Part shown: one piece after another, positions 3,999-57,880 of the stretch
Layout: each line of letters starts with the position of its first letter
Numbering within the stretch: the stretch's first letter is position 1
Assembly (NCBI GenBank): GCA_964036045.1
Contig: OZ038378.1
Location: 171,492,001 to 171,556,000 of the forward strand
From: Eutreptiella sp. 'Long Island Sound 2002'
Taxonomy: Eukaryota > Protista > Euglenida
Length of the DNA stretch: 64,000 nucleotides
Reading direction: 5' to 3'
Notes under the pieces: model-generated
Seen by the model: the letters and a program-made list of their open reading frames with translations, nothing else
Databases searched by the model: none
Told to the model about the DNA's origin: nothing
Program-made: the position numbers and the translations under genes

Positions 3999-4278
3999 CC
4001 ACTTCTGATTTTGCCCCCCGCTTTGCAGCGGTGGGGATCCCCGATACGGCAGGGGTGAGGTAGCCACTTTGCCCACTTGTGGGCCACTTCTGATTTTGCC
4101 CCCCGCTTTGAAGCGGTGGGGATCCCCGATACGGCAGGGGTGAGGTAGCCATTTTGCCCACTTGTGGGCCACTTCTGATTTTGCCCCCCGCTTTGAAGCG
4201 GTGGGGATCCCCGATACGGCAGGGGTGAGGTAGCCACTTTGCCCACTTGTGGGCCACTTCTGATTTTGCCCCCCGCTC
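3999..4278. repeat. 85-bp tandem repeat, ~3.3 copies
   Basis: Seen: CCACTTCTGATTTTGCCCCCCGC starts at 3999, 4084, 4169 and 4254, with units nearly identical. Confidence 0.95.
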
Positions 4279-5065
4279 TCATCAAGGGTAGCCGGATGAA
4301 GTTTCTTCGCAGTTTGATTGAGGACGTGCAGACACGATTCAAGCGAGCTGAGTGGGATGGTAGTGCTAACCTGGAGGTTTGGTTTGAGGCAAGCTCGTGT
4401 TCGTATGAGAGAGAGCTTTTAGCTACGTGACGGCTACGGACTTTGGCCAAACCACGGAGCGCATGTGTGAGACGCTGTGGGTAAGGTGCAATGGGGAGGC
4501 ACCAGAGGATTGGGGGCCCTTTGAGGTTTTTGAGGACCTTCGCAAGACCCCTTTCCGCCCGCGCAAACGGAAGCAAGGGCATGCGGTTGAGGTGGAAGAT
4601 GGTGGTTTGCTTGGGTCTGCGGCTTTCAAGGATTTGGCAGTTTCTTTGGAAGAGGATGGTCAGGCAGAGGTTCCGTTGGACATTCGAGATTTGTGGGTTG
4701 TCCCCACGAGGGCGACACGTGACGCCGACATTGGCGATGTGTATGGGGTTGAGTTGGAGGGTAAGGACGAAGACAGTGAGGACGAGGATTTGGAGCAGGC
4801 AGGTGCAGTTGCCAGTAGCTCCTCTCCTGACCTTCGTAACCCCTCAGCTGTCCCCTCCACCGATTCTAACCCTGCCGCGCAGTTGGTGTTTAGGTATGAT
4901 GTGGATGAGGCGGTGTTGAAGGCAATGGAGAGGGGGAGGTTGCATGAGTGGACTAAGGTTGAGTTTAAGGCCATTTGTAGGAAGCATGGTTTGAGTGTGG
5001 GCGGGGGGAAGGGTGAGCTTATGGAGCGTGTCAGGGTGCACTTCCAGAGGTTGTACCAGCAGTAG
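4279..5065 (+). pseudogene. C-terminal remnant of a hAT-like transposase with an acidic linker and C-terminal SAP domain
   Basis: Seen: removing one GA from the (GA)n run at ~4406-4414 gives SSCSYERAFSYV, matching the hAT dimerisation-domain SxxxERxFS motif. The C-terminus LHEWTKVEFKAICRKHGLSVGGGKGELMERVRVH (4940-5045) fits the SAP pattern. Assignment by eye. Confidence 0.65.
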
Positions 5066-5631
5066 GGAGTTTGTTTTCAGCTGTGCCACCGGCGATGGAA
5101 CATTCGGGTGGTCGAACGCTGCATCACTGTATTTGATCAGAAAAAGTATTGCTCTTGTTCATGTTGAATTGTGCAGGGTGTGAGGTAGGGTTCTGATTCT
5201 ATCATGCAACACATGTGGGGCTAGGATCATATGGTTGTGTGCTGAGACCAATTTGGGGCTAGGGACTCATGGTTGAACAATTGGGAACACCGGGGTGAAG
5301 ACATGCACTGTCCGCGGGCTCTTTTGAAATTACCTGGTTCTGGACGGACTTTTTTTTTTTTTTTGCGTTAAGGACAGCCCTGGGCTGGCTGTTCAGCAGC
5401 ATAGATCCCACATTGCCGTTTGTGTCGTCTGGCGCATCTTGTGTCCAAGTGTGCTTTCGATAGTCCCGGAGCAGACAGCAGTACAGGCACATGTGCTGGA
5501 TCTGCACAATGGGAATCGTCCGGTGTGTGCACCGTGGAGGAAGTCCCACATAGATCCCACATTGATATGCTCAACAAGCATGACATGCAAGTAGAGACTT
5601 ATTGCACCTGACACAACTGGATTGCAGGTGG

Positions 5632-8082
5632 AGGAACTGCCATACAAAAAAGCGTCCCAAAGCGCAAATTGCACTGACACTGAGCGCACCATGAAATCAA
5701 CACATATGAAAACAGCAGGTGACATGACAACGACACCTGCATCTGGCTCCCTGTTTCTTTTCTTCAGGCCCTATCACTATGCAATGGCCAAGAACTACAC
5801 CAGTTACAACCTGACTCTTGGACTATTGGTGACGATAGCCCTGTTTCTTTTGTTTCATGCCTCTACGGTACCCACAGGTATGCCCTGTGTTTTGCTCTTT
5901 GCGTCTCATGCAAACTCATTCTTCCAATAAGCATAAATTTCAGTGCACTGGGTCATGACCCTCTTGCCCTGGTAGACTCACCAAAATTTTGGGAAGGGAC
6001 TGTTGCCAGTCCCTGAATGTTTGACTGCGTGTGTGCTTGTAGTAGGGCCAGGTAGAGTGGGAACTTGAAACTGGACCCAAATGTACGTGCAGACCCCATT
6101 GTCTCTTGCTTTTCCATTTCATGCCCGGGTGGGATGACCCACAAAGGGAGCAATTGGCGGAGTGTGTGTGCGGTGCAACTATTAGAGCTTGCACAGTAGG
6201 GTGGGCTGGTCACACCACTAGACTGAAGATGACACTAGGCCCTGTGATGCATGATGTTGAGGTTCAAACATTTTGAGTGTATTGGGGGTCCAGGTCACAG
6301 CCCCCACAGGGGGGTGGGGATTTCGTGGGGTGATAATTTCATGGGAAATTTTCGTCTTTAAGGAAGGTGGCGAAAGTTTCCCTTGGCGAAATTTAGGGGT
6401 GTCGGCGCTGTGCAGGGTCTTTTGATGTCCTTGAGCCGTCCGTTTATTGCGATGGTGCACGAAATCTGCAGGCCCCGCACCTGTGAGTGCTGGCGCAGAG
6501 AGACCTCGTTTTAAGAGCATTCACAAAGTATAAAACACATATTGCGGGAATTCTTTGGCTGACAGCTGAGATACTGTCTGGCCATCGGTGTATTTTTGGG
6601 GTTGTGCATGCTGTGGGTAACCCAACTGGAGCACATCATTTTGTGGCTTCACGATTGAACTCCCTGCTGCCTTGGCAATATCAAAAACAGGGGTCACAGG
6701 CCCACATCAGCTATCCGCGCACTGTCACCACTGCTGTCACTACCACTACTATGGGGGAGGTATGGCGCGCGGTGTGCGCGGTGCGATGCGCGGTGCGCGG
6801 TCTTTTGGGTAGTGCGGCTGACTCTTTCCCCATAATTCCCCCTTCTGCTTTTTCTCAGCACCTCACCGGCCCTGTAGCACCCCCCCTCCAGTGAGCCCGT
6901 CTGCCGTGGCTGCGGGATAGGGCGCCAAGCCAGGTTGCGATGGCTGTCGCGATGGTGGACAATAGCCACGGGTGCCTCAACCCCTCCCCTGTAGGGAAAG
7001 CCACAAGCCACAATCAGAGGCACAAATGTTTTCCGCGGAAGCGCACGTAGGGCAAGGGGGCGGGGGTTTGTGCATTATTTGCAGTGTGTGCCAAGTAGTA
7101 AGTACCTCCCCCTATGGCAGGGTTCCTGAGTTTTTTTGGGGGGTTTGGTTAGTTGGGCAGTTGCCATTTTGGTGCACTTTGTATGCAAAAAACAGCCTTT
7201 GGCATGGTGATAGGACCTTCGAAACAAGCTCACTTTAGGGTACATTGAGCTTCTGAGTGTCCGGTCATCACATCAAACGGAGCTTGCAATCTGTGCAGGG
7301 TGCAAAATGCCGTCCTTTGCACCCACCATGAAAATGCCTTTGCATGCCACAGCTGCTGCACGTGTCACAGGAGAAGCATTAAGACAGGAGTTTTTCCAGG
7401 TAGTATCACAGATGTCTTTGAAAGTTTGGTCAAGATTGTAGGTGGTTCAGAACGGCAATGTTTATCTGTTTTTCTTTTTTTCTGCTTTGTCTTTGTGCGC
7501 AGTATTAGTGATGGTGGCTGGAGTTTGGGGATTTTCTTAGAGTATGCTTTGGTACCCGAATTCTGAGAGGATGTCCAAAAGTTGTGTTGGGTACACCAAC
7601 ACAAGAGCATCATTCTGAAGAACTGGAAGACATAGGTGGATTGTGGTCTGACACAAATATGAAAGGTGCAATGGTGCACTGTGTGTTGTGGCCCCTGAGG
7701 ATCACGTGAGTCAATGGGACGTCAGGATTGCAGGAGATCCAATGATGCAAGCTTCCCGTTTCCATGTCTTGTCTGCAGGAGTGTCAGTCGAAGTCAACAT
7801 CTCAAATAATGGTGCTCATGCTGACGATGGCCCTTACATGGCACTACATCCCGATGCATCCAGGGGACCACCGAAAGGACCAGCAATGAACCCCACAAAG
7901 TAGTTGGCCCTCTGCTTTAATCTAAGTGAGTGCTGCCCTCTGATGTTCCTGCAACCCTAACACAGATGCAGGTGTCGTTTTGATATCACATGCTGTTTTC
8001 ACATGTGAAAATGGCAGTCTGGGTGTGCTCAGTGTCAGTGCAATTCGCGCTTTTGAGATGCTTTTTGGTGTGGCAGTTCCAC
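5632..8082. repeat. Pair of ~115-bp diverged inverted repeats (5632-5746 and 7963-8082)
   Basis: Seen: GGAACTGCC...GCGCAAATTGCACTGACACTGAGC...TGAAAACAGCA...ACGACACCTGCATCTG at the left and its reverse complement at the right. No TSD found. Confidence 0.7.
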
Positions 8083-10761
8083 ATTTTAGCTATGTTGAGC
8101 CCCCAAATCCAAGGCTCAAAAATGGGTCAGTTCGGGAGTGAAACAGGGCCAAAAGGGCTCCAAAATGCATTCTTCCAAAAGTGAAGACCACTTGGGATGC
8201 TCATGCAAGCATTTTTGGGCTATTTTAACCCATTCTTTTCACCCTTTTCACCCATGCATTGGCATATCCCATGCGCACCATATATTGCAGCCATCCCCAC
8301 ATTACCCGGTGGGGGCACAAATGCAGGCATAGACAAGGACAAAGACTAGGGCGCAGCCAAGGCGCGTAGTTTGGTGTTTGTGGAGTGCATTGTTCATTTT
8401 CTTCAATGTTGGTGTCCTCACCAGCACATCCCTGGTATATTCAGTGATGGTACAAAATGTTTGGTGAACCATGCCAAGACAAAATTATGGAGGTGGCACA
8501 CAGAGTTTGTCAAAGATTATAACGTTCTCGGGAACAGAGTTCCAATCAATTTGCAAGTTTCCTTGGATAGTACGTCTTAACAGTAGCACATAGCACGTGT
8601 GCGATGCAAATGCACAAGGGTTTGTATCACTGTCAGCAATTTGAAGCGGAGGGCATTTCAGGGTTTACAGGGATCATGTTGAAAATAATGCTGCATTTCT
8701 TTCACCGCTGAGGCTATGCAAAGGTTGTCATGGGACATGTATAAAAATGGGCTAAATCTTGCCCACAGTGGGGAGGAGACGTGGCTTCATATCCTTTGCC
8801 GCATTAGGTTCTCACTAGCTACCTAGTGAAGGTCAAGGGATTGGGCACGTATATTCACCATGGTGGCGCCATAAATTAGTAATGTGGTCGCTCACTACCA
8901 ATCAAAGTTGATTACAAATGTGATGTTGAATGTTTCTGCCCTGTAAAGGGTGGTTTAGGAGGGTTGTGTGGTGACAATCCACACTCATTTAGAGTGTTAT
9001 GTACATTTACATGTCATGTACATTTTGTACGAGTGTTATGTACATTTTGTGCACAATACAAGAAGACTCTTCCATTCTTCTTATCATACGTCTTTTTGTA
9101 CATGTGTGCCTTATGAGCTTTGATGGACCCATAAAGGAATCTTTGTCATGTATCCCATGTGTGGAGCAATCAATGAAACATGCAAGCTGACCCAATGCCA
9201 TTGAAGCAAGTGGGATTCTCCCATTTGCTCAACATGAGCCGAGAGATACTCAAGTTACCCCATAAAGGTGTCTGCCTAAATTTGTGAGGATAATGGTCCC
9301 TAGCGGATCAATCGTGCTTGTTGTGTGTGTTGAATGTTTCCTGACCTGAGGGAAGGTGGGCAATGACTGTGCACAATAAGGGTGTTCAGAGGCTGGTCTG
9401 TGGGGGGCATTCGGAAGGGTGCAATTTTGGGCTTTCTTGGATAGTGTGTGTTAAAAGTAGCACGCACTGAGGACTCTGCGGGGATTCCCCCATGTCAGAC
9501 AGCACACGTGGTGAATGGTGTATGCCTACGCATTGCTGTCCAGGGGCGTTTTGCACGCTGTGCCGGCGCTGTGCCCGCGCTATGCACAAAGTTTGTACAG
9601 GACCATGCCCAACCTGCATAGTAGTGCCTAGTACCTGTAACAATGAGCCTTGTTATGCATTTATATGAGTTGCATGCATGCTTTGCCCTCATTTCTAGTG
9701 CATTGGTATGTGTTGTTGTGCATCCTTTCCTATAGGTTGGTGGTATCTTTTTCAAGATTCGCCCAATGCCTATCCAGTGGCTCTACTGTAAGTTACTGTT
9801 AGTTCTGATTTGTCCTCCTCATCAGCCGGCATCACAGAAATCCCATCGCGAAGCAAGAAGTATTGCCGTGTGGCTGTACATAGCCGAAAGGAGGTTGTGG
9901 ATGTGGACGCCATGTCGAGTGATGCATGTCCTGTACGTATGCTAAGCGAAGGGGAGTACGGCGTTCACACTTCGAGTTAAGGACAAATTTTATTCTTGCC
10001 TTTTTTTGCATGTGTCTTTGCTGTGGCTGGGTACACTGGCATCTCTTATGTTGGGGGTGGGGTGAAACATCAGGCTGTCCAACGTTGTGGGGGTGTAGTA
10101 CGGTTTGTATTGCCAATTGTAGCAAAAACCCCCAATTTCTTCCTGTCATGTGCGCGCTGTGCCCGCGCTGTGCATGCGCTGTGCACACACGCCCCCTATT
10201 GGTGTCAACAGTGGCTTTGATATTTCTTTCAGGAGTGCCATTCTCAGGTGTCTCAGCACCTGAAGCGCAGCAGTGTGAAGCAGGCTGTTGCACAGGAGTT
10301 TGGAGTGCATCAACAGTGTAGAGCAAGGCCCAGTTTGCATGGTCAACATGCTCAGGCAGAAATGATCTGCCAACCCAGGATTACACCGGGCAGGGCAAAA
10401 TGGGTGCAAGGGCAGTGCGCAGCGAATCTAACATGCAGGCAGGCAAGGCAAGTTGAGCACAGGAATGGGGTGGGAAAAGCGGGTGGATACAGTGCCAGAA
10501 CTATTGTAGATTTTGATGTGACGCAATCCCCTCATACCCATGACTTGTGGCAAGAAGGTACACTGTGGCTTGTTTGCGTTGTAGTGAGATAGTGCTGGGA
10601 AGCCGCCAGAAGCCGTTTTCTTGGCGTCTCAACTCGCTACCACAGAAGACGTCGTGCATGGATGGTTCAGCCGGAGGGGTGTATCTACGGGTCCCACATA
10701 CCCCCAGGTGTGCTGTGGTGTACATTGTGTTTTGTGCAGCCATTCATGTCTCAGACAGAAC

Positions 10762-11559: not shown

Positions 11560-12410
11560 ATGGCATGGACCTGTGGTCGATCAAGCTGCTGAAGTGGCTA
11601 CCAATGCTGCACTGGGAAAAGCTGGCGCAACTTCTACGAGCAGTGGAAACAACGGGTGTCTGGCCACACAGGATAGATGAAGGCTTCACGTCGCTAGTGC
11701 CAAAAGGTGAAGGGGGCGGAGACCCCATGAAACTGAGTTCACACAAGCAACAACACAAGATCAAAATCACCTTTTCGCAGAACTGCAGCAGAGATACAGG
11801 GGGGGTTGTGAACTATTATCTGCCCAGAAAAACAGGGGCAGACAGGAGACCTTTGACCGTCTTGTCGCAAGTGTACCGCATATGGGCAGGACTGCGTATG
11901 GAAGATGTGCTGGAGTGGCAAGAGCAATGGGCACACGAGGAATCGTACGCCTTCCGCCCCCACCGAGGGTCCATGGACGCTGCAGTGCTCATGTAGCTTG
12001 TGGAGCTGTCCCAGGCCCCGAAAGCCCCGCTGGTAGGGGCGGGCACAGATTATGCCAGATGCTTCGACTTAATCCCAAAAGCCATATCCATCGCCATGCT
12101 GGACCTCATGGGAATGGAACGCGGGGTGTTGAATGCTTTCCACGGAATGTACACGCAGCTACAACGCAAATTCAAGATCAAGGGATGCCTGGGGCCCTGG
12201 TGGCAGGCCACCAATGGCATCTTGCAGGGGTTCCCCCTGAGTGTCATAGTTATAAATGCGTTAACAACCACTTGGAAGCGCATGATAGACGACATCAAGA
12301 AACCGGTGGTGGTAGCCACAAAAGGATTGCCGTCGCAGCCGAAAGAGCCGGAGACACCATCGTGCTGGTGGAACAGTGTGGGAGCAGGAGCCGACCAAGC
12401 GTGGATATTG
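11560..12410 (+). mobile_element. Non-LTR retrotransposon reverse transcriptase fragment, N-terminal half, decayed
   Basis: Seen: TSLVPKG...RPLTVLSQVYRIWA, YAFRPHRGSMDAA, GTDYARCFDLIP and NGILQGFPLSVIVIN, matching LINE RT domains 1-4. In-frame TAG at 11994-11996. Truncated before YADD. Confidence 0.85.
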
Positions 12411-12574
12411 CAATGTGAGGTGCCCCCGGGGGGGGGGGCGACTCCGCGGGTCCTTGGACGCCAACTCCCCCCCCCCCCCCCCCAAGGGGCCTCCGGCCGA
12501 CAGTTAGTTGTCAAAGGTATGAGCCCAAGGAGCCAACGGGCGCCAAAGGCGCCCCGGCGCCAAAGGCGCCCAAT

Positions 12575-12792
12575 GGGGTTATGTAGCCACCTTGCCCACT
12601 TGTGGGCCTTTTTCTGATTCTGCCCCCCGCTCTGAGGCGGTGGGGATCCCCTAGGCGGCAGGGGTTATGTAGCCACCTTGCCCACAAGTGGGCCAATTCT
12701 GATTCCGCCCCCCCGCTCTATAGCGGTGGGGATCCCCGAGACGGCAGGGGTGACGTAGCCACTTTGCCCACAAGTGGGCCAATTCTGATTTT
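12575..12792. repeat. 85-bp-family tandem repeat, ~2.5 diverged copies
   Basis: Seen: same unit as 3999-4278 (GTAGCCACYTTGCCCACWWGTGGGCC...CTGATT..GCCCCCCGC...GCGGTGGGGATCCCC). Confidence 0.9.
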
Positions 12793-12837
12793 GGGGGCGC
12801 CTCAAGCGCAGTGCGCGCGCAGTGCAACTATTTGGGC

Positions 12838-13060
12838 GTGCACCAACCGGCCCATGCAATGCGTGTTGTGCCGAGATACCATCTGGTTGTATGGCATGGC
12901 CCATCATTTTGATTCAAAGCATGCCGGTTCTGCACCTCCGAGTGCCTTGTGCGTCAAGGCAGAGGAAAAGGAAATGGTGGTGAACTGGTCGGGAAAGAAG
13001 AACAACAGCAAGCGGTCTCATCATGAGATGCATGCTGAGGATGGAGGGGACGTAGCTTAG
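12838..13060 (+). pseudogene. C2H2-like zinc-finger fragment, probably transposon-derived
   Basis: Seen: CTNRPMQCVLCRDTIWLYGMAHHFDSKH has C-x2-C...H-x4-H spacing. It is followed by a basic patch and then a (TCC/TCG)n run at ~13110-13187. Confidence 0.45.
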
Positions 13061-13355
13061 GGCCCTCCTAGTGCCAGCACAGCACCAGCCCCGCACCCCA
13101 AGAGGATCAAGTCCTCCTCCTCCTCGTCCTCCTCGTCCTCCTCGTCCTCCTCGTCCTCCTCGTCCTCCTCCTCCTCCTCCTCCTCCGAGGCATCTTCCGG
13201 GGCGGAGCGTTCTCGCCCGTTGCAGAGTGTAGGGAGGAGGAACCAGGTGTTTAGTTGGCAGCCAAAGAAGAGGTCGGCCGCCGCAGCATATGATTCTGAT
13301 AGCTCATCAAGTGAAGGTGAGTTATTTAAGTAAGGGCTTTTTCCTGTGCCCTTAT

Positions 13356-13475
13356 TAGGTCGATACGCAGAAAGTGTTCCAAGGAGCCACTCTTGGTCTT
13401 AGGCCCCTCCCTCCTTAGGTCGATCCGTAGAAAGTGTTCCAAGGAGTCAATCTTGGTCTTAGGCCCTTCTTTTTC
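13356..13475. repeat. 60-bp tandem duplication, 2 copies
   Basis: Seen: TAGGTCGAT.CG.AGAAAGTGTTCCAAGGAG...TCTTGGTCTTAGGCCC at 13356 and 13416. Confidence 0.9.
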
Positions 13476-13655
13476 ATTCCTCGAAACATTTGGGGAGAAG
13501 GCTGCTGCAAGTGTGGTGTAAGCGGGGAGGGGTGATGTACCATCATGGCGGTGTGGTCCGAGGCCACCGCCCCAAGTTGCTATGACCACACGTTTGCAGT
13601 TGCATTCCAACCCCTATATATATAAATATAAATATATATATATATATCCTCCAAT

Positions 13656-14849
13656 CTACACCCCTCTCCCAACTCTAGGTGGCTCCACCACACGGCTCTA
13701 AGGTACGTGCGAAGGGCACAAAGTGGTGCATACATGTGGTGGAAGGGGCTAAACTCGGTCAAAACGGGCTCAAAACGGGCTAAAAACACTTGTTTGAGCA
13801 TCCCAAATGGTCCAGGATCACTTTTGGAAAAACACGTTTTAGACCCATTTTTGACCCATTTTTGGTCCCAAAATGGCCCATTTTCAGGGCATTTTGGCAT
13901 TTTCCATGAGCCAAAACCCGTCGCCACGGGCTCAAAACGGGCTAAAACCACTTGTTTGAGCATCATAAATGGTCCAGGATCTTTTTTGGAAAAGCGCGTT
14001 TTTGACCCATTTTTTACGCATTGTTGGTCCCAAAACGGCCCATTTTCAAGGCATTTTGGGATTTTCCATGGCCCAAAACGCGCCACCACGGGCTCAAAAC
14101 GGCCTAAAAACACTTGTTTGAGCATCCCAAGTGGTCTAGGAACAACTTTGGAAAAAATGATTTTTTTTCGCCCCGGGGACCCTGGTGGACCCACCGTTGG
14201 CCCCCACTGTGCGTGGGCTGGCCGGCCCTCCGGCTGCACCAAGTGACCTCTGGTACGGGGGTCTACGTGTCTCGTTGGGCGATTCTGAGGCTTGGAAACC
14301 ATAAAAAGTGGGGGGTTGCGGGTGGACTAGGTGCCTCCGGAATTCGTTTTTGAGGCACTTAGCCCAAGCTACGGCCCGTGCTTGGTTTCGGGGTGCTGGT
14401 GCACATTGCGCAGTTTTTGGGGCTTTTTGGCGCCTTTTTGGGCCGTTTCTCGGACATATCGTGGAGTTAGAGGGCACCAAAGGTCCCTTGGTCACGAGAA
14501 AGTCAAGCCGCACGTGGAGTGTAGCAGCCGTTTGCCTTCGTTTGGCTGTTTTGAACCCGTACTAGGGCTGTTTTGGGCGAAAAATGGCTGTTTTTGGCCC
14601 AAAACTGCGCAGATTCGGGAGGGCACCTCCCGACTTGGCGCCCCCGCCCCGGGCCGCCACCGGTGAGTTTCTGGCTCAAAACTTGGATTTGGCAAGGCCA
14701 CCACCTAGGCTCTAGGATGGCTAAAGTAGAGTCAAGCCCGAGGCGTTGGGAAGGTGCAATGACCAAAACGGCACGGAGACGTGCTTGTAGTTGTAGTTGT
14801 TGCTTGTTGCTTGTTGTTGTTAGCTAAATTTAAGGGGAGAGGGGTGTAG
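13656..14849. mobile_element. Non-autonomous TIR element (~1.2 kb) flanked by (TA)n tracts
   Basis: Seen: perfect 15-bp inverted repeat CTACACCCCTCTCCC (13656-13670) / GGGAGAGGGGTGTAG (14835-14849), with AT microsatellites outside both ends. A diverged relative lies at ~44040-45520. Confidence 0.7.
13766..14165. repeat. 162-bp tandem repeat, ~2.4 copies
   Basis: Seen: GGGCTCAAAACGG.CTAAAA.CACTTGTTTGAGCATC at 13766, 13928 and 14090. Confidence 0.9.
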
Positions 14850-17872: not shown

Positions 17873-18625
17873 CAAAGCACTACCTAGGCCCCACAGCACG
17901 GCATAGGCAAGGCCTACGGTCTATCAGCACACCGTGCACGCGCCGGGCATCTTTTTTTGACCATTCCCCGCCCGTGCCTATTTTTGCCCCCACCTCACCC
18001 AACAATTGGGAGTACCTTCTCGCCGTGTCTAAGAATTTGGCCCATCCTTTGCACCCAGTTTATGACGATGGCAAGGGTGGTGGTTGGAAGTGGTGGGAGT
18101 GACATTTTGTGTTGTTGAATTCTCATATTTCGGCTTGTACAAGGTGCCTTGCAAGGAAGGTTTGCGGTCTAGTGCAGTCTACTTCGGGGACTTCCCAAGG
18201 TGAGGATAAATTTGGTGCTAGAGATAAGATACCTAATGCCACGGTAGCGCGCTGGGCGCGCCGGGCAAGCATTCCCCTTTGGTGGGAGGACCACCCATAG
18301 CACTGCACTGCCTAGGCCCCACACCATATCTTGGGGGGGAGAAACACCCACTGAACATGCGTTGGCGGTGAATCCCTGAACCAACTAGCAACATGTTTGA
18401 ACATGGTGCGCACCATTGATCTTAGGCGTCACAAGTTGCCCACCCTCTAGGACCCCGTATACGCGCGATGTGAGAATATTCTACTTTTGTACTTTGAGTA
18501 TGCTATTTGACATATGTGACCGATGTTGTTGGCAGCGCTGTGTGACACCCATTGAAATACGTGTTGATGTGTTAGCCTTGTGTATCCACTTCTTCTAGTG
18601 TGTTGTATTTGACGTTCTTCTGAAG

Positions 18626-18926
18626 CTGGCAGAAAATGAGGCCAGCTTTTGGGTAACACGGCAAACAACTATGTGTATATGCAGTTTTTGACCCTTCTGG
18701 CCGAAATTTCGGCCAGCTTTTGGGTTTCTTGGTGAATAGGTATAGTTATTTTCATTTTTCTTCGGGCTGGCCGAAATTTTGGCCAGCTTTTTGGTCTGTT
18801 CACTATTCAAGCACTCATATTCCGGTTTTTGGTCGGTCTAGCTGAAATTTCGGCCAGCTTTTCCTATTCTAGTACATATAAGCAATTGTTTCCCCTTCGA
18901 ACACACCAGGCCGAAATTTCGGCTAG
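18626..18926. repeat. Array of five 20-bp palindromes (CTGGCCGAAATTTCGGCCAG consensus) with ~50-bp non-identical spacers
   Basis: Seen: copies start at 18626, 18697, 18767, 18838 and 18907 (spacing 71, 70, 71, 69). Each is followed by CTT, and the spacers differ. Confidence 0.9.
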
Positions 18927-18997
18927 CTTGCAATTGTCATTGTTCATGTGTATTCCACCTTACACTCCTACATAACTGTTTTCTTGTCTCAGTAGTA

Positions 18998-20828
18998 ATG
19001 TCTTCTGCTATTACTGTCAATGTCGTGCATGCTGCAGTTACTGGTGCTTTTGCTACTACAGCCAAAGGGCTATTGCGAAATGCATTACGTGGTGGGACTC
19101 TGCAAAAGCTTTTGCAATTCTGCCTTATGTTGCGGAAGAATCACAGGAGCCGGCACTCTATGACACAGTTGAAGGCTGCCGCCACCGAGAAGAAGCCCCC
19201 ACGATGGTACATGACATTTTTGTCACAGTTCGATGCCCTATATTGCCTTCTGCGTCGTATGGCCCTCCCATACTCTAACTGTGGGTCTGGTTACAACTGG
19301 GGTATTATGTCCTGCCGCCAACGCCGTAAGGTAGGAGTCCTTGGTCAGTGTAACACTAAGCAGGAGTCCATTCACCATCGTGGTGGACTAGCAGCACACA
19401 ACTTGTGGAACACCATGCACCGTAGGCAAGTTTGTATATGGTTTGATAACCTGAAGCGTTACAGGTCGGGAGCCGATCCCCATTCACCCGACTTAACCCT
19501 AAACTGTACAGCTGTTGCTGTTTTGCGAACTACTGCCCTACCTGCATATCCGGGTCTACCGGAGCTGGCCGAAATTGAGGCTAGGGTACCAAAGGTTGCA
19601 GATGACATCTTTCGCTCACATAGAGCATTGTTTGATCGTATTGATGTTGCCGACCAAGGTATTCAGAGAGTTTGGGTTCGTGCTCCTTTAGATATTGCCA
19701 GAAAAAATGTTCGTTCCCTCAACTGGAGACCCTTATTCCTGTCTGAGCTCCGCTCCGGCACACACAAAGAGCTTTTGCAACTCGTGGTTGATTTGTCATG
19801 TGTGGAACACCGCACCAGGCACTGTGTTCCACTGCTTGTGGACATGAAAATACACTTTGCCCTACTGTGTTATGGTGCCGCTTATGTTCCGTGGAATGTA
19901 CCGCAACTACTTTTGGGTTGTATACGGTGTATGGCATAGCTATAAGTACTGTGTTGAGTTGATCTACAGGGCCTTCCTGCCATTCATTAAGTGTTTGGAG
20001 CAGGGGAATAGCCTTCAGGTTGGGTCTATCCTACCTCGCAAGGTCAAGGTCATCCATATGGAGAAGACCTTGCTTGGACTCATGCTAGCCACAACGTCCA
20101 ATAGAGGCAGACTAGATGAGCGTGTGACTGCCCTGGTGAGTAGCCAGCGGGACTTGACACCCATTCAGCGCAAGGGTCTGCGTATGTTATTAGCCCTTAA
20201 GGCTTTGCTGTACGCATACTGTCCAGTTGCTTTCAGCATTGGGACTTTGGTGCGTGAGTGCAACTGAGAGTCCCGCGGGGCAGGTTCCGGGATTCTTGCT
20301 AAGCAATCACTTGAGATGTCCCTACTGCTCATGCTGAACATCATAAAGCCCGAGGAGCAGTTAGCCACGGAGTATGTGAAAACCACTGCTGTTGCTCTTT
20401 TGTTTTGGAGTCAGTGGCATTGCGCCTCCTTAGGGTGTATCCACTCTGAGGAGCTGGGCGAGGCACTTCTGAGTCGGTTCTTAGCCCACTGTCGTCGCAA
20501 CACTGCCTATAACAGTGTCCAACAGTCGTCTGATTTGTTTCTAACACTTCCCCCTGTCCAACCGGGAGAGAAAGTTTTGCGTGATGTGCTGACTGAGAGA
20601 TCTGTGGCAATGTTCTCTGCCAATCTGAAACAATTCATCTTGACAGCCCATACACAGAGCCTGCCGATATGTGTTCCCGTTCCTGACTATAAAGTTGAGG
20701 TGAGAAGACTGGATGCAGTTGAGGATCTGTCTTTCCCCGGTACCATGTCTAGGACACGAATCACCACACACCGGTTAAAAGTGGTTCTGTTGCATGCAAT
20801 GCAAAATCTGGGGTCTCCTTTTTTATAA
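18998..20828 (+). pseudogene. Putative DDE transposase (~610 aa reconstructed) with one frameshift and one nonsense codon
   Basis: Seen: ORFs 18998-19939, 19857-20267 and 20316-20828 join via a frameshift near 19910 and an in-frame TGA at 20265-20267 (CN*E). Candidate catalytic motifs are VCIWFDNL (D 19445), VPLLVDMKIH (D 19841), YGVWHSYK (H 19935) and SEELGEALLSR (20445-20477). Transposase function is inferred from position inside the TIRs and from motif order. Confidence 0.6.
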
Positions 20829-20923
20829 AGTCACTCGTATGTGTGTTGTTGTATTCTTCTCGATAGTACCGTTTTCGTGTCTGATTTTTCGACCCTGCTG
20901 TTTCTAATACTACTGTTCCGCAG

Positions 20924-23051
20924 CCACTCGCTGGGTTCTGTTGGGGGGTCAGCATGTGTACACTGCTGCCCAAAAACACAAGACGGAATTTGAGATGAAA
21001 AATATGGAGACTCCGGATTGGACCTTGGTATTTGGTGGTTATGAAGTCAAACAGGATTGCCCCCTGCGGACTAGGCGCCGGCTTGCAGGCTTACATCAAA
21101 TTCAGACCACTGCTGGCTCAGCATCCACCACATCGGAGCGAATGTCCCTACTCCTGGATAGGCTTGAGGATGAGGATGCCAATGAGCACACCCTTTTGCA
21201 TCACATTACTGTTATGCTTGAAGAGTGTGGTGTTACTGCCGAGGAAGGCACTGTGGTGTGTTTCGTTTATTAACTCGGTTCTGTCGATCGACCTGGCCGA
21301 AATTTCGGCCAGCTTCTCTATTCCACATTTTCTCCTGTGCAGACTGTTGTTGCCAAACGGTGGGGTGGCGTTGGGCGTTTGGTGAAATTTGTGGGTCTTG
21401 CTGCAGTAGACGCCATGGCAGCCATGGAGAAGCGTGGATTACATCCCGCACTGGGTACGTTCAAGGAAGTGGAAGGCATCACGCCTAACCGACTTCGCGA
21501 CATCGTAGGTTACATGGATGGGACAAAAAGTACCCTACCTGGTCTCAAAAAATTATATAAAAGATGTTAAAAAGGCCCAGATGTGGTCTTGGCACATCCT
21601 TCATCCCGAGGCGGTTACCAATGGGCTTGTGAACAACACCACAGGTATGTTTTGGTCAAACAAGGGTTTGTATTCGAATAAATCGACCGACCTGGCCGAA
21701 ATTTCGGCCAGCTTGTGTGTCGTTGAACTAATGCACAATAGGATCCCACTCTGTGACACCACCTATCTGCAGCTACACTTGGTACTATCGAGATGGCCAA
21801 AAGGCAGTGCGCTATTGCATCACACCTGAAGGTAGCCTATGGCAGCTGGACCTGGACTGAAGAAAACCCCTGGCCACCGTGGTCAGCAGTAATTAAGGCA
21901 CGTGTTTGGAAGGAACCCAAATATGAGGGGTTGCGGGGATTGTTGCTGAAGCCTGTTGCTAAGCCTATTTGTGAAAAATCGGATACTGGTCTGGTTAGTA
22001 TCCAGTGTGCTAGGGAGTCCCTCGTTGAGACAAGCCCAGGCAAACTCATTGCAGAGTCAGGCCGTGTGGAACTGATGGCAATGCGTTGTGGAGTCCATGT
22101 TCCCAGTATCATTAGTTCACTGCCCTTTGCTGCTTGCGTCATTGAGGTGCCCCGCCTCTATACAGCTGGTTTGCATAACCTGGTTGCGCAGCTGCTTCTG
22201 TCCGGTGTGCCTGTGTTCATTGCGGGTGAGTCTGCTGATGTGAAAGCCACTGTTGCTGCTTTGAAGGCCACTGTAGCTGAGGATATGTATCAGTGTGATG
22301 TTTCAATTTACAATTTGTCAACCAAGACCCCGTTGTATACTTCCACTTCCCATCTGGTTTCCATTTGTTCTGCCACCGCCTTTGATACCAAGTTGCCCCG
22401 TTACGTGGCTTATACTGAAGGACCCATGTCCTCTGTGATGCCTGTTGAGATATTCTCATTTCTTTTGAGCCTGGTTCCGGTCCCAGAACGGGCAGGCAAC
22501 TGGTTTCTGCTGGGGACTCTGTCTGTGTACTTTGCAAGCATGATGTCTACTAGGTTTTCCAAGGACTGTAATGTTGTGTGTGCCCTTTTGGGTGAGGAGA
22601 CTGCCGTGCCTGATGAGTTTGTTCAGTCCATCAGAGCGGCTATCACCAACGCCGACACGTGCCCCCCCAAGTCATGGGAGGATGTGTACCATGACTTGGG
22701 GGCAGGTTTTCCTGTGGATTGTCCTGGGGTTAGGTATGTAGATGAGGATCCCGAGGAGCAAGATGGGGAGGCAGAGTCGCAACCAGAGACACACACTCCA
22801 AAGAAGAAACCCAAAACTGCCCCTGCCCCCTCACCTAGTGGCACGCAGTGCGCTCAAGCCACCCCCGCTTCCTCCTCAGGCACTGTGGCAGAGGTATGAA
22901 TGCTTTCGTGAATCATTTTTCACCATCCCAGGGTGGAAACACACAGTCACAGAACTTTGCCACTGCCAAGCCTGCTGCTGCAGCCACTGCCAAGCCTCCT
23001 GCTAACACAGGTGCTAAGAAGCCCCGTGCATCTGGTCTGCGCAAGCGCTAA
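20924..23051 (+). pseudogene. Second transposon gene, multi-exon, unknown function, with a K/A/P-rich basic C-terminal tail
   Basis: Seen: predicted GT-AG introns 21256-21342, 21645-21741 and 22894-22931. Splicing the first joins EEGTV to TVVAKRW in frame. Splicing the last joins SGTVAE to GGNTQ...KKPRASGLRKR*. A 368-codon open stretch runs 21793-22899. Probable frameshifts near 21560 and 21857. Confidence 0.55.
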
Positions 23052-23924
23052 TGCCACTCCTAATGCTTCTATTGCCTGTCAGTATGAAGTCTGGCCGAAA
23101 TTTCGGCCAGCATGCAGTCTTCAGCCTCTTATTATTGTGTTTCTCCACAGGCACTGCAAAAGTTTGTTTTGATTGGTCAGGTGGCAAGTATTTGCTTGTA
23201 ATTGAGTATATTACGTTGCACACCATGTTGAAATGTCAATGCTCCTGTGTTCCTTGCTCCTGCGTATTGTCATAGATACCCATTTCAGTGATCATATTCC
23301 GAGTTTCGATGGACCTGGCCGAAATTTCGGCCAGCTCTTCGAAAAACGTCCAAACACATGGTCCTATTTGGCAGACAGGCCTAAGCTGGCCGAAATTTCG
23401 GCCAGGTTGGTTAAAATAGGAAATACAGGTACATGCTTTTGGGATAGTTTTCTGTGTGCTTCGATGAAAGGTATGTTTGGGGTTCCCTTACCTGTGGTGT
23501 ATAGGGGGGTTCTGTGATCACCCGGGAACAAAGGGGAGAGAAAGAATAGGCAGCCCCCCCCCCCCCCCCCGCACTGGAATGCAGTGGTCTAAATGTAAAA
23601 CAACACTATATTTTGGTGATTGTATATCTTTATTTTGAAAATCTGTGTGTTGCCAGAAATGCAAATAATGGCATATATTTGAAATACACACCTTGTTTTT
23701 GCATGTTGCCACCAGGGGGGTATGGATACCCAAAAAATAACACCCCTTTTCACATACTTTTCCCCTCACTACAACATGGACTTCCGTGGGCCATAGCGCC
23801 AGGTGGGGGGTGGGCAACTTGTGACGCCTAAGTTGATGGGTAACACTTGGTGATCCGGAACCCACTGGCCCTTTGTTACATTTCCCACATCACTGGTGGT
23901 GAGCACCCTCCAAACTTCACCGTC

Positions 23925-24200
23925 TTGGGGGGCGCACTCAACGTAGTGTGTGCGCACTGCAAGTATTTGGGCGTGTGGCCGTACTACAAACCCATACTTT
24001 GAGATACTAGGGGTATCATTGTTGCCCCTAGCGTAGGTTTTGATGCTTCTTCCACATTGGGGATTTGGTGTTTTTGGATTTTCACCCAATTTCACCCATT
24101 ACCACCCCCTTTCACACTTTTTTGCTCATCTCAACCACAAGTTCTCCCCACCATGGGGACCCGAGAAGGCAGGGGTGATGTAGCCAATCTGCCCAATTGT
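23925..24200 (+). repeat. Dispersed repeat family copy (GGGGGCGC...GCAACTATTTGGGC...CCCATACTTTG.GATACTA...TGCTTCTT...TTTTCACCC); other copies at ~28385-28590, ~33955-34260 and ~57765-58072
   Basis: Seen: the same motif order and high similarity among the four loci. Confidence 0.8.
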
Positions 24201-27945: not shown

Positions 27946-30159
27946 CCTGCATACCACAGTAGATCATGCTTCATCGGATTGTCGGTTTGCATAATATTTG
28001 TGATGGTCCGTGTCTGTGCTCCTTTTTGTTATGGTGGATGACAAGGACATTGAACACACCGTGAAAGGACCTTAGAAACCGAAATCATAGAAGTGGGGTA
28101 GCACCTTCAATGCTGCGAAGCGTGCTTGGCAGTTTCAAGGTGATTTTATTGCCAAGACGAGGACATCATGTGGTGTACATCATGCCAATGCTCTTTGTCT
28201 TGGCTGGGGAAACTATTTGGCTTGGCTAGGGAAACTATTTGGGGTCCGCCAGCGACAAACTGCCAAACTGAATGCGCGGAAGCCAAAAGTAGCAGCCCAA
28301 TCTCAGTGCCCTACTTGAATATCAACCACAGCCACAAATATCACCACAACCCTCCCCAAGTACATCAAGCTTTGTAGTTTATTCAGAGGGGGCGCCCTTT
28401 GCGCATTGCAACTATTTGGGCATCTAACCGTATTGGAGACCCATACTTTGTGATACTAGGGGCATCATTGTTGCCTCTAGCATAGGTTTTCATGCTTCTT
28501 CCACTTTGGGGATATGGCATTTTTGGATTTTCACCCACTTTCACCCGTTTCCACCCCTTTTCACACTTTTTTTTTCTCATCCTCACCATGGACTCCCACA
28601 CTTTGGTGTGGGCCCTTGAGTTGGGGTGATGGACTCCCACGCTTTGGCGTGGCCCCTCGAGTTGACGTGACGGACTCCCCAGTTTTTGCCTGACCACAGT
28701 CGAATGCTCTATGCGAGGCCGCATCTGTGCTGATGAGGATGCCTGGTTGTACCACAAGTTGAAAACGGAGGTTGACCTGCATTCCCTCCTGCAAGCCACA
28801 TTACCCGCCGGTCCGGTTGAGGATGAGGTGGACACATACGCAGCTTTGGGACTAGCTGGTAGGGTGAGTGAGCTTTCAATTGACCAAAAAGAGGATATGT
28901 GTGTGGCTTTCCGCATTTTGCATGATGTCTTATATAAAGGGAAGGTAGCTTGCATTTGTCTTGAGCTAGGGTAGTTTGGGTGACCTAAATTTAGGGGCGT
29001 TTGGGTGGCCTAATTTTGAGGATGTTTGGAAGGGGTCGGTATGGCGGTTCTTCATAGGGGAATCTAGTCTAAAAGTAGCGCGCAGTGTGCGCGCAGTGCA
29101 AGGATGGCCCCAGAGAATTGGGTATCTAAAGCTGTCTTCAAAAATCTGCAAAGGCAAAAAGGCCGCAGCTCTCGTCATGGCAAGTAATCATTTACTGGCC
29201 GGTTGTGGTTCAAGCTAGTTAGGAACAACCACAGAATTACCTGCAATTGCAAACCAGAAACTACGTGAAAAATACCGTGAAAAATACCGTTAAATAATAA
29301 ATCACGTTAAATCATGTTTCATCCAGGTCAGCCCAATCATGTTTTACTGAAAAACCCTGGTGGTTTTCAGACAACCACCTGTTTTAGGGTAGAAATATGG
29401 TGGAGTGTATAAATTTCGTGCCACCTTATGGTAGCATACCCATAATTTGGCTCCATCTTGTCTTCCAGCGAACACCTCTTCTAGGTGCAAATATGGTGTA
29501 ATGCTCAAGTTGATTTTCATGCCATGGCTCCATTGCTTTAACCATACCAGGGTCTCCAACAAGTCTGTGGGCTTATATGCGCACCACCTCTCATAGCAAT
29601 AGCAGTAGTTGGGTTCTTCTTGTTGTTTTTTTCTCCCTTTTTGTTTCAAAGAAACTCATCTTGGGTATAACAAAACAAAAAAGGTGCACTCAGGCTACAT
29701 AACCCCCCCCCCCCCCACACACATTTTTTGTGCCCTGGGATCACCTTAAGGAAACAGTGTACTTGGTTTACAGCAAAAAATACTTGGGTCACATATTTCA
29801 TGGTTACATTTATGTGGTGCCTGCGAAGATTTGGGCATGGCACAGGAGCAAAGCACCCAACATGTGCCCTGCCTGAAAAAGTGCCCGCTGGGGCAAGCTG
29901 GGCCAAGTGCACCAGAATGGGGTGCCCGCAAAGTGCCTGAGAAGGCCCGGGCATGACCGCAAGGCAAAGTGCCTGCAAAAGTGCCCTTGAAGGCATAGGG
30001 TAAAGCCCCCGCCCCCAGCCCTCAGCCCAACTCCCTCCCCCTCTTGGAAACACCAACTGGCAAACCGCTCCACCTTTATCCCCCCCCCCCCCCCCCTGTC
30101 CCCTGCCTTTTGCCTTGATGGTATACCATCCCCTCCCTGGGGCCATATCTCTGCAACAG

Positions 30160-33100: not shown

Positions 33101-36100
33101 GGACAGCTTGGACAATTTATGTTGCAGCTCTGCTGCGAGATACATGAAGTACTGTTGGAATGCCAGAGTGACACTGGAGGGTGACGACCATTGTTGATTT
33201 ATGGCCAGACCCCCAAAGTTCTGCAACCCGGCTTTCTGCAGTTTGAGATTTTGGGGAAATTGTTGGCCCCAAAGGCTCCGGAAAATCACCTCGAAGAGAG
33301 GTTGTATCAAGCGCAGGCGCGGGCGTCGTATACCCCCCTTTTTGGGGGTCATTCGCGTAGCATACCCCAAGGCATGCTGTTTGATGTCCAACCCCTTGTA
33401 AAATCATTATTTTGCCCAATAAGACGATCCCCCTATGGATTTTTTGATTCTGAGGCCTCTATCCCTGACACTGGATATCACTTTTGGGGGGGGTCAAAAG
33501 TTTATGCTCAGAAGTTTGTGCTCAGCGGGGTTTGAACGAGGTTGAGATTGGGCAGCGATGACCAGTTGGCTGGTGCCCCAGGGGTCGGCTGACTGGGAAA
33601 CGAACTGCCGAGCTGCACGTCTGCGGTCGGGTGCATTACCGTTTGACTGTTGCTTGATCTGATGATATTTGTGCTCCCCACTGCTTGAAGCCAAGTCTGC
33701 CACTGAAAAACCCAAACTGTGTGTTTCTGTCTGCCTGCCTGCTTGCTCGACTGACTGTCTGACTGACTGCTTGCTTGACTAACTGACTGATTGGCTTCGA
33801 GGTGCACTGCCGAAGGCAATAGAAAAATTTTTTGGCCCCCCGGGGGAGGAATTTTTTTTTTACCCTATGTGCCTATGGGGGAGCGTTAGCGCGCCGGGCA
33901 TGCGCCGGGCGCGCCCGGGCATCTTTTTTGACCCGTGCCCCACCGGTGACCTTTTAGGGGCCGCACTAAAAGCAACTATTTGGACGTCTAGCTGTCCTAG
34001 AACCCCATACTTTGTGATACTATGGGCATTGTTGTGGTTTGACAAAGGGTATTTTGATGCTTCTTTCACATTCGGGACGTGGTATATTTGGATTCTCACC
34101 CAGTTTAACCAATTTTCTTCCATTTTTGCTCGTTTCCACCACATCCACTCCTTACTAGGTTGATTTCTCCCCACCCTGGGGACCTCAAGAAAGCAGGGGT
34201 AATGTAGCCATATTGATTTCTCCCCACCATGGGGACCCCGAGAAGGCAGGGGTGATGTAGCGAATACTGAGTTTGCGCTTCGTTCTTATGACGTGAGGCA
34301 GAAACGCTGTCCAAACCGCTTGCGGCTTGGGGACTCATTACCATAGCGAAATCTATGGGAAAGGTAAAGGCAAAGTACCCTTTGTTAAGTAAAATACAAA
34401 TGACATTTGGAGTTGTGAATTCACAGCTATTGTCTAATTCTGCGACGTGCTTTGTAGGGAAGGTGTGCAGTCCATAATGGTCTATTTGGGGGGCCTTCTC
34501 CATCAGAGGGTAAATCTCGGGCTGAAGTCGGGATAGTTAATAGAAAGGTAGCGCGCCGGGCGCGGAGCCGGGCAAACATTCCCCCTATACTCAAAATACT
34601 CATAATTTTGTGGAAAATTCAAAATGGATGAAAAGCACAAAAAAATTTGACTGGCCTCCGGGTTGCACTGATGGGAGCCTCAGCCGATGGTCAATTTTTT
34701 TTGAAAATTTTTTGACTCCTGTTGCGTGTGTTCAAAATGATAAGCGCGCCATGGGGATCACTTTGAGGTATGTATGTCCCCCCCCCCCCCCCCCCGGACA
34801 CCGGTGGTTGACCGTCGACCCACCCCCCCCCCCCTTCCCCCCTTCCTCCGGACCCCCAAAAGTTCTCGGACACGGTTGGGTGTTGAACAGCCCCCCCCCC
34901 CCCAACCCACAATAGGAAAATACCGCACCAAGGGTGAAAAAAACCCCCACCACAGACCGTCACTTTAGGGGCAGTGGGGCAAAGTAAGGGAAAGGGATAG
35001 CATAGGCACTGCAAAATACCACGCATATAAAGCAAGTTGGTTAAGCAACAGCTCACGCGAAATGTCTGCATATGCAGCTCACCACTGATTCGTAGCAATT
35101 GGTGATCTGAAACCCTCTCGCCAAGTGTTCCCACTTCCTACATGAGTGGTGGAGAACACCCTTTGGACTTCAAGGTCTTCAAATGACTTTGAAGCTTGTC
35201 AGGCTGTTGCAGCGGCTACCTAGGGCAAATTTTTGATGCCGCAGTGCTTTCTTTGTGTCACACATTACCCCCCCCCCCCCTGCAACCCCCCCCCCCCTTG
35301 CAATCCCCCCCCCCCGGGAGACCGTCACTTCCATGTTTTTCTAGTTACCATGTATTGTGTTGGGTTGTGTTGCCCATCTGCTTTACGCATGGCCTTGCAT
35401 TGCTTTCCCATTACTTCAAATGAAGCACCTGTGTGTGTTTTGTGATATTCTCGCTCCAAAGGCCAGCCTCCAAACGGACTGGTCTGCCTTTGCAAGCGGG
35501 CGCTAAAGCGGCTGCCAAACCAGCCCCGCACGCCATTGCCTCCTCCTCATCAGCCAGTGCAACACGCCCCGTGCCTGTCATGCAAACTGAGCATGTGCAA
35601 CAGTTCAAAGTGTGTTATTCTCGTACCCAGAAGTTCTTTACCGTTCCTTTGGATCCTCAATAACATTTGTGTTGGATGAAACACATTGGCACCGCATCAA
35701 CGCAAAAGTCGCTTCACACGTGTTCTCTTTGCTTGCATCAGTGGAGGGTACCAAAGTTTGCCTTGAAATACCCTTGCAATCCCCCCCCCCCCCCCCCGGG
35801 AGACCGTCACTTGGCGACCGTCTCCCCCCCCCCACCCGGGAGACCGTCGCGCACTAACCCGGGAGTTTGCAAAGGGGGGGGGGGGGGGGGCAGGGTAGCT
35901 TCTCCTACAAGCTTGCCACTGATCCCTAATCCTCGGGTTGGTGTCCTAGTTTCTAGTCACTAGTATTAGGCGGTTTGGGTCACTAGTAGTAGTCGGTTTG
36001 GGTTGTAGGGCCTAGGCCTCACCTTGACCAACGGGAGGCTAGCACCCAGGCTGCCCAGCAGCACCTCAATGAAGTACAGCCACCTCGGACACAAGCTCGG

Positions 36101-56179: not shown

Positions 56180-57880
56180 GCGTTGCCGTCGGTGGTCAGT
56201 GCAGGTGCAGGAAGGAGCAAACAGGACACATTTCCTGGAGATTCTGCAAAGATGGACAGCCCCCTTCTGGCCCGCAAAACCCTTGCCCAGCAATGCAGCG
56301 ATATCCGTATGCTTGGTTTACATCGCTTTGCCCGTTCACCACCGTCCAGGGATCAAGCACAGCCTTATGTCAGGGCACCTTAAGAAAAAGGTGTACTGAT
56401 GTCCGATGTCCCAGCAAAAAAAAAAACAAAAACCTTTTTGCCTAGCTTTAGTGACAGTGAAACACCTACAAGTGGGCCACTTAAATTTTTTCAAACACTT
56501 TTTTTTGGTACTCAGGTTACATCTTTTCACCGCTACGTTTTTGCGGTGTCCTAAAAGTGCCTGTGAATCTTGGGCAAGCGCACCAGGGTTGTGTGCCCCT
56601 TTCTCCAGGCTTCGTTTTTTGTTGGTTTTGAGGACATGGACACTGAACACACTGCGACGGGACCTCAGAAAACGAATCATGGAACAAAAAAGCGAGGTAG
56701 CGCTTTCAATGCTGTGAAGAGTGAAGAGATGTTGGACAGTGTACAACATCTATTCATAGGATTGGGGGTTCCAAAGCCCTTTTCGAAAATCAGTAAAGGC
56801 AAAAAGGCTGCAGCTTTTGGTCATGGCAAGCAATGGCCTCTCCCCAACGGGATGTGAACATGCTGTATTGGCATGTATGTTCACATGTATGCTGTCAAGG
56901 CCAGGGGTGTTGGAAATGTTTCCAACCATAGATTTCCTGTAATACAATTGGCATTGTGTGGGTTCTAGCGCAGGGACGCTGTGCTTGTGGAGCCTGCACA
57001 AAGGTGACACCACGGGGGGGCGGCCGGGGCCGGTCCTTGTATGCGACACCCCCCAGCCCCCCCCCCCCCCCAAGGTGGTTTTGAGAGATAGCGGTGTTGG
57101 GGCCATTGCGCCAACGGCGTTGAAGTTTTTTTGTGCATGCTTCCCTTTCATCAAACCATCCATGTTTTGAGCGCCAGATTAGCAAGACAAGGTGCTAAAC
57201 AAATGTCATTTGTTGCGAAGTGAAGATCACCACAACCACTGTGGACATACCTGTGAATTTGCAGCCCCTACTTCACAACAGCCACCAGCAGCTTCCCCAA
57301 ACCCGCCCTAGACACACATCCCCCCTAGAGGTATGCATGTGGTTGTTGTGGGTTGTGTGTAGGCCCCCCACCTTGGGAATCCCCCCCCCCCCACCACACC
57401 CTCTAGCCGCCCCCCCCCCCAAACCCTCCAGCCAACCCCCCCCCCCCCCCACACCTCCACCCCCCAAACCCTCCAGCCGACCCCCCCCCCCCCCCCAAGT
57501 TTTGATCCCCAAGTTTTGACGGATAGCTGGGGGAGGGGTGTCGCATCAGGACCGGTTGTAGTCCCCCCCCCCCCCATGGGTGACACAGACTTTGCAAGTA
57601 GGGATGAAAAAAATGGTTGACTTGATTCCGTTGGTTGGGGGGTTGCAGAGGGGGGTGGGGAGCAACCCAACAGCGCAATGAAGAAAAAAGACTATGTTGC
57701 CACTGTTTCCCCCCCCAGTTCCCCCCATTTTCCGCATTTTTTGTCCCCACGTTGTCGTTTGAAAATGGATATTTTGATGCTTCTTTTGCATTGGGGATAT
57801 GGTATATTTGTATTTTCACTCTTTTTCACACATTTTTTGCTCATTTCCACCACATCCATTCCTTTTTAGGTTGATATTTA

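Follow-up and report, generated by a model that had tools for sequence, protein, structure and literature searches.

Positions 18421–23832 of a 64,000-nucleotide stretch of the euglenid Eutreptiella sp. 'Long Island Sound 2002' (contig OZ038378.1; the whole stretch is referred to as the window) very probably hold a dead copy, shortened by an internal deletion, of a two-gene cut-and-paste transposon that is high-copy and recently active in this organism. Among cut-and-paste transposons, the family probably represents a new variant at superfamily level. Sequence comparisons mark its second gene as an integral partner of the transposase, one that is kept even between lineages with transposases of only ~30% identity.

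The window element is 5,412 bp long and is bounded by perfect 25-bp terminal inverted repeats (TIRs) that start with CTTAGG, namely CTTAGGCGTCACAAGTTGCCCACCC at 18421–18445 on the forward strand and its exact reverse complement at 23808–23832. Scanning of the whole 64-kb window with up to 3 mismatches found just these two matches, and none in 100 shuffled controls. Directly outside lie identical copies of TTGAT at 18416–18420 and 23833–23837, a 5-bp target-site duplication (TSD), which implies that the target cuts were staggered by 5 bp. Four full-length copies (L001, L004, L005, and L006) were fetched from different contigs of the same assembly. They are bounded by the same perfect 25-mer and each sits in its own perfect 5-bp duplication (AGGCA, ATATG, TCCCT, and TGACA, respectively), so that, the window copy included, the TSD is a perfect 5 bp in five of five copies, with no common target sequence. 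All four also encode the same family of open reading frames (ORFs), and the first of these, ORF1, is intact in L001 and L004. A sequence-only reading of this DNA had described the perfect CTTAGG repeats and the exact TTGAT duplication as the limits of a transposon, and the other copies bear this out. TIRs, a TSD of fixed length, an RNase H-fold DDE (Asp-Asp-Glu) transposase, and many copies are together the general traits of a class II element.

The family is high-copy and recently active, its young copies being 97.7–98.7% alike. These full-length copies measure 6,532–6,947 bp, and the window copy is 93.5–94% identical to them. The intact ORF1 belongs to a sequence cluster of 267 members, and the largest ORF of the second gene has 60 near-identical database matches, all in one ENA assembly; the clusters concerned comprise 175 and 134 sequences. 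Contigs from sequencing runs labelled as three organisms, and from one estuary RNA-library run, cover the element. The recent transposition that had been proposed from the perfect ends therefore applies to the family, but the window copy itself is ~6% diverged from the young copies.

The window copy is a dead deletion derivative of a ~6.5-kb element. Missing from it are 1,092 bp (L001 3928–5019), with the junction at 20810/20811, and contigs from runs X5 and X17 extend into the missing sequence from both sides. The deletion took the last 127 codons of ORF1, three intergenic palindromes, and the first exon of gene 2 except for 26 nt. Relative to the full-length copies, ORF1 also lacks 6 nt at ~19864, in frame, and 7 nt at ~19917, which shifts the frame, and carries a TGG to TGA change at 20265–20267; gene 2 is frameshifted at ~21555 and ~22886. 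The sequence-only reading had counted only two lesions in ORF1, which was too few. It had also described two genes, and a second, intron-containing gene is indeed present, but the pair is not intact, as the deletion cuts both. Given the deletion, the frameshifts, and the stop, the window copy is non-autonomous, with neither protein still encoded, and could be mobilised in trans at most.

ORF1, the transposase gene, survives in the window as a remnant at 18998–20810 on the forward strand, split into three pieces that are 91–94% identical to the 736-aa intact ORF of L001; further ORFs follow on the same strand. In L001 and L004, ORF1 is a single ORF of 736 codons. In L001 (2101–4311), codon 282 encodes Ala in place of a near-invariant Asp (LLVD to LLVA), and L004 keeps the Asp. 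At E ≤ 1e-3, an exhaustive HMMER search with the first ORF1 piece returned 393 diverged cluster representatives. Many of these proteins are 600–820 aa long and ~30% identical; they come from metagenomes at ENA and JGI and from Logan assemblies, and none is annotated beyond 'hypothetical protein'. A 26-member alignment has invariant columns at D150-N151, R228-x-P230-x-D232, G315-x-W317-H318, E360, G420, R424, and W475, and near-invariant ones at D282, E489, E490, and E493. The order D (WFDN), D (LVDM), GxWH, E (EELGE) that had been picked out by eye matches D150/N151, D282, G315/W317/H318, and E489/E490/E493. None of 76 family members has a Pfam match at E ≤ 1, with the DUF6589, hAT, MULE, RAG1, and P models included in the search. 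Pfam, NCBIfam, and PADLOC scans of six window ORF pieces and of gene pieces from L001 and from the metagenome contigs L002 and L003 gave chance-level matches only, and a search of PDB sequences with the transposase family profile gave no match.

AlphaFold2 modeling of the transposase on the family alignment reached a predicted local distance difference test (pLDDT) score of 83.8 and a predicted template modeling (TM) score of 0.79. In the model, D150 lies on the first strand, D282 directly past the fourth, and the WH motif past the fifth, and the helix carrying EE..EA comes after ~170 helical residues. Foldseek placed Hermes, the P element, ISCth4, RAG1, and Transib at the top, all as weak matches. 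An independent all-against-all structure comparison, which covered 48,161 representative chains, again ranked the P element and Hermes highest, ahead of Tn5, ISCth4, retroviral integrases, RAG1, and Transib; the matches to the integrase cores cover residues 143–530. At the level of the predicted model, the fold class is secure: the protein is a DDE enzyme of the RNase H type in which a large helical domain is inserted between the second Asp and the Glu, as had been supposed from the motif order, with the P element and Hermes nearest and Transib/RAG1, Tn5, and ISCth4 behind them. No single superfamily stands out from the modeled structure.

Gene 2 lies downstream on the same strand. In L001 its exons are predicted at 4712–5045, 5133–5464, 5552–5852, and 5981–7269; removal of three GT-AG introns of 87, 87, and 128 nt leaves 751 codons, stop-free in L001 and in L005. 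The window copy keeps the last 26 nt of exon 1 (20811–20836, mapped from L001 5020–5045), followed by predicted intron 1 (20837–20923, GTATGT...CAG, 87 nt, no palindrome); exon 2, placed by sequence comparison (20924–21255), which contains an LGGQH motif; intron 2 (21256–21342, GT...CAG, 87 nt); exon 3 (21343–21644), which encodes a domain kept in distant relatives and contains the frameshift at ~21555; intron 3 (21645–21772, GTATGT...CAG, 128 nt); and exon 4 (21773–23051), which has 429 codons in intact copies and contains the frameshift at ~22886. The splice sites are conserved in four to five of the five copies (four for intron 1). Between the window copy and L005 the introns are 6.9–10.9% diverged, intron 1 most (10.9%), against 2.8–5.0% for exons 2–4. 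In L006, a 480-bp insertion (9253–9732) interrupts exon 2; its ends are inverted over ~16 bp (TGTACCCTTCGTGAAC... against its complement, with one mismatch), and it looks like a nested element of the miniature inverted-repeat type with a 2–3-bp duplication.

Codon comparison of the window copy with L005 gave 24, 16, and 63 differences at positions 1, 2, and 3 of ORF1 (58 synonymous and 37 non-synonymous codon changes) and 25, 22, and 42 in gene 2 (40 synonymous and 43 non-synonymous). Crudely converted, these counts correspond to estimated ratios of non-synonymous to synonymous substitution rates of ~0.2 (ORF1) and ~0.3 (gene 2). In comparisons among the young copies, changes are spread evenly over the three codon positions. 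The excess at position 3 between lineages points to purifying selection on both genes while the lineages diverged, and the equal change among young copies to neutral decay after insertion, the pattern to be expected of a functional transposon family.

What the gene-2 product resembles was approached through language-model (ESM) feature searches, in which its N-terminal region scored 0.95 with DUF3723 and 0.92 with a ParB_N cluster. These scores are leads only, and a 'ParB-like' label is a lead that failed profile tests: none of 63 gene-2 members matched ParB_N or a related profile in Pfam, NCBIfam, or PADLOC. Feature searches with exons 3 and 4 (AAA-like, 0.79; unnamed phage clusters, 0.88) fell below 0.9 and were rejected as evidence, and the Foldseek list for the N-terminal model was left unused as noise.

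A further family trait is a 20-bp perfect palindrome, CTGGCCGAAATTTCGGCCAG. It occurs eight times in the window (at most one mismatch in the 16-bp core), all eight inside the element, and 13 times in the full-length copies, at fixed places. Five sites form a 5' subterminal array with ~70-bp spacing (18625–18929), and all full-length copies have five sites at matching positions; those at 18696, 18766, and 18906 are good and those at 18625 and 18837 degenerate. Three more are 3' subterminal (23090–23109, 23314–23333, and 23385–23404), and introns 2 and 3 of gene 2 contain exactly one each (21292–21311 and 21691–21710). The five upstream sites are spaced at 69–71 bp (window 18625–18929; L001 1731–2027) and the three intergenic ones at 68–71 bp. 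As the spacers are partly alike, the arrays amount to loose tandem repeats of ~70 bp. A reading of the upstream array as similar to clustered regularly interspaced short palindromic repeats (CRISPR) was rejected, the same palindrome standing at fixed places throughout a eukaryotic transposon.

The two metagenome contigs, whose transposases are ~30% identical to that of the window family, have both further traits in forms of their own. L003 has the same gene order as the window family, and in L002 the two genes are divergent. L003 ends in perfect 23-bp TIRs that start with ATCTATGG, and its flanks, GTAAG and GTATG, suggest a 5-bp TSD, as yet unproven. Both contigs encode relatives of gene-2 exon 3 (E values of 2e-8 and 3e-7 for L002 and L003) and of the N-terminal LGGQH region (pairwise E values of 3e-6, 6e-5, and 2e-8). 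Each also has many copies of a private palindrome: TGCGCGC-(4 nt)-GCGCGCA with a varying dyad centre in L003, and TTCGTAAC-N-GTTACGAA in L002, where arrays lie upstream, downstream, and between the genes. Since gene 2 and a private palindrome recur in lineages this distant, they are family-level traits and not the cargo of one element. The L003 palindrome also occurs inside the called transposase ORF (1235–1254 and 1852–1938), where it is translated as LRAQARN; one such site falls in conserved coding sequence and two or three fall in a lineage-specific insertion, which may be an in-frame intron. Three decayed sister copies (L007, L008, and L009) were compared as well. L008, from a sister subfamily in the same genome at 43% identity, has the palindrome CTGGGCGAAATTTCGCCCAG, which differs from that of the window family by one change per half-site, placed symmetrically. 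It is the only one of the three in which an own palindrome is still visible, and TIRs were seen in none of them.

The surroundings of these copies hold further repeats. The right flank of the window element (23950–24190) recurs at 28400–28572, 33972–34265, 57772–58033, 4032–4255, and 12727–12840, with 87% identity over 173 bp at 28400 and as short units of ~54 bp elsewhere; the element thus sits in repeat-rich DNA. A run of 16 C lies inside its 3' part (23556–23571), where many public contigs break and then continue into unrelated sequence; long G or C runs are also present in L007 and L008. Beside the decayed copy in L007, a 976-aa ORF (11714–14644) with a weak Pfam match to MULE (Mutator-like transposase) is probably another transposon.

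We propose that the transposase would bind and cut at the TIRs in a cut-and-paste reaction, and that the palindromes would be occupied by a dimeric DNA-binding protein that the element itself encodes, with the product of gene 2 as the likeliest candidate. Binding there might let the transposase tell the ends of its own family from those of sister families, and the bound protein may help bring the ends together, by analogy with TnpA and the subterminal repeats of En/Spm. In its broadest form, to which we give somewhat less than an even chance, this proposal describes an undescribed eukaryotic DDE superfamily, widespread in environmental protists (the 393 cluster representatives above), with a self-recognition module in which a partner protein and a family-private palindrome change together, at sites in subterminal DNA, between genes, and in introns.

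Several points weigh against this interpretation. Binding of the palindromes by either element protein is putative and argued from analogy. The intact-looking ORF1 of L001 has Ala at 282, the presumed second catalytic residue, and the catalytic triad as a whole is a tentative assignment from conservation and fold alignment ranges. Gene 2 has no match in Pfam, NCBIfam, or PADLOC (63 members and single pieces) or among PDB sequences (family profile), and the AlphaFold2 model of its N-terminal region, with a pLDDT of 54.9, is too poor to use. The gene-2 introns are predicted, and contigs from the RNA library run unspliced across introns 1 and 2, which may reflect DNA carry-over. A search of the window and the fetched loci for a paralogous empty site found none, and neither a transposition event nor an excision footprint was seen. 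Among the public-run contigs, no clean empty-site joint or intron joint is listed; one contig joint, 18321>23834, was considered as an empty site and not counted, as its short side is 18–20 nt and it misfits the insertion boundaries.

It is exceedingly improbable that the segment is immobile, a host or virus-derived pair of genes between chance inverted repeats. Nothing was found for this except that movement has not been demonstrated directly, and identical ends with differing 5-bp duplications at five unrelated sites effectively refute it, to which the hundreds of near-identical protein copies, the DDE transposase fold, and the empty shuffled controls can be added. The main rival to the proposal concerns the palindromes, which might act at the RNA or regulatory level instead, as boundary hairpins, as promoter or terminator sequences, as intron elements, or as triggers or decoys of host silencing, and their placement would suit this, for they bracket each gene and lie in introns in the window family, with the L002 layout in keeping. 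Those in the intron RNAs fold into an 8-bp hairpin (z scores of −2.5 and −2.8), the symmetric change in L008 also keeps the hairpin, and the varying dyad centre in L003 is loop-like. However, the arrays occupy both subterminal regions, as do the sites of transposases and accessory proteins in En/Spm, Ac, and P; the palindromes of the window family are exact through the centre as DNA; a private sequence per lineage is more readily explained by co-evolution with a protein that reads a specific sequence than by a generic hairpin; and no Rfam family matches. We judge the RNA-level explanation unlikely, although the present data cannot separate it from a DNA-binding role.

The remaining alternative concerns rank: the element could be a divergent lineage of a named superfamily, most plausibly Academ and otherwise a deep hAT, P, or Transib branch, and so a new family only. 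The best ESM Atlas matches to the transposase are near full-length (TM scores of 0.59–0.64 over 533–572 residues) and fall in unnamed eukaryotic clusters from Mucoromycota, Mollusca (TM scores of 0.59 and 0.62 over 533 residues; 35% of members carry PF20231, DUF6589), and Cnidaria. These model-based shape matches are a real lead to distant kin, and the fungal cluster overlaps in taxon with AcademH, which occurs in Basidiomycota, Ascomycota, and Mucoromycota (PMC10799480). The nearest solved structures are those of the P element and Hermes, and the 5-bp TSD is that of Transib. However, the Pfam DUF6589 model never matched, so the shape likeness is not membership; the likeness to DUF6589 or fungal proteins guessed at in the sequence-only reading has an echo in shape (TM ~0.6) but none by profile, in any of the 76 members. 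A named superfamily such as Academ is a possible home for the element, but on the features compared in the closing paragraphs we regard placement in one as a tentative option, somewhat on the unlikely side, and favour a new superfamily-level variant.

About two dozen superfamilies of eukaryotic cut-and-paste transposons are distinguished. One more, with terminal sequences and a TSD length of its own, would be of real if specialist interest. More unusual is the architecture, in which a second gene is obligatory and lineage-private palindromes occupy the ends, the intergenic space, and introns. Should the partner protein read these palindromes, the element would carry its own address label, which would explain how many sister families can share one genome without mobilising each other. 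DNA transposons of euglenids were not described in the literature found by our searches, which returned no account of such elements in this group and one passing mention of DUF6589. As the family is abundant and young in a euglenid genome, it also matters for annotation, where hundreds of transposon ORFs could otherwise be taken for host genes.

Comparison with known systems begins with the lead from gene 2. The palindromes recall parS, and the strand-helix region around LGGQH resembles what we take to be the DGQHR/GxxR region of the ParB/sulfiredoxin fold; in contrast to ParB systems, the host here is a eukaryote and the setting one of transposition instead of partition. With Transib and RAG1 the family shares the 5-bp TSD, in five of five copies, and the fold class only. 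Transib TIRs begin with CAC, whereas those of the window family begin with CTTAGG in all five copies, the structural scores are below those for P and hAT, and none of the 76 members matches RAG1 in Pfam, so that a RAG1-like core is not recognisable by sequence. Gene 2 is unrelated to RAG2 as far as the family scans, which gave no family match, can reach. The P element (PDB 6p5a) and the hAT transposase Hermes (PDB 6dww and 8edg) are nearest in structure, at 8–10% identity and with no sequence-level match. Unlike them, the window family has no Pfam match to a THAP or BED finger or to the hAT dimerisation domain (PF05699, none in 76 members at E ≤ 1), and has a 5-bp TSD in place of their 8 bp, CTTAGG termini, an obligatory second gene, and private palindromes. 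The P element TIR is 31 bp long, against 25 bp here. The hAT TSD is 8 bp, or 5–6 bp in a few rare groups, and only those groups would fit a 5-bp duplication.

Academ resembles the family in two respects. The shape of the transposase recalls eukaryotic clusters of which one is partly DUF6589, which we infer to be an Academ-type transposase, and a partner gene stands beside the transposase, as in AcademH, or in the form of a nuclease in AcademX. Academ elements have TSDs of 3–4 bp (AcademX) or 9–10 bp (AcademH) and carry a nuclease or helicase (PMC10045372), whereas the TSD of the window family is 5 bp in five of five copies and gene 2, having no match in Pfam, NCBIfam, or PADLOC, is recognisable neither as an XPG nuclease nor as a superfamily II helicase. 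CACTA elements, including En/Spm, have CACTA termini, a 3-bp TSD, and a different, Transposase_21-type transposase, none of which the window family has. As judged from sequence, the family thus departs from the defining features that were tested for Transib, hAT, P, Academ, and CACTA, the separation from Academ resting on descriptions of TSD and partner, with the transposase not compared with Repbase. En/Spm differs further in producing TnpA and TnpD by alternative splicing of one transcript, where the window family has two genes, and its subterminal repeats are neither exact 20-bp palindromes nor placed in introns. Those repeats are recognised by the accessory DNA-binding protein TnpA, and En/Spm, with two element proteins and many short subterminal sites at both ends, provides our working analogy for the family described here.

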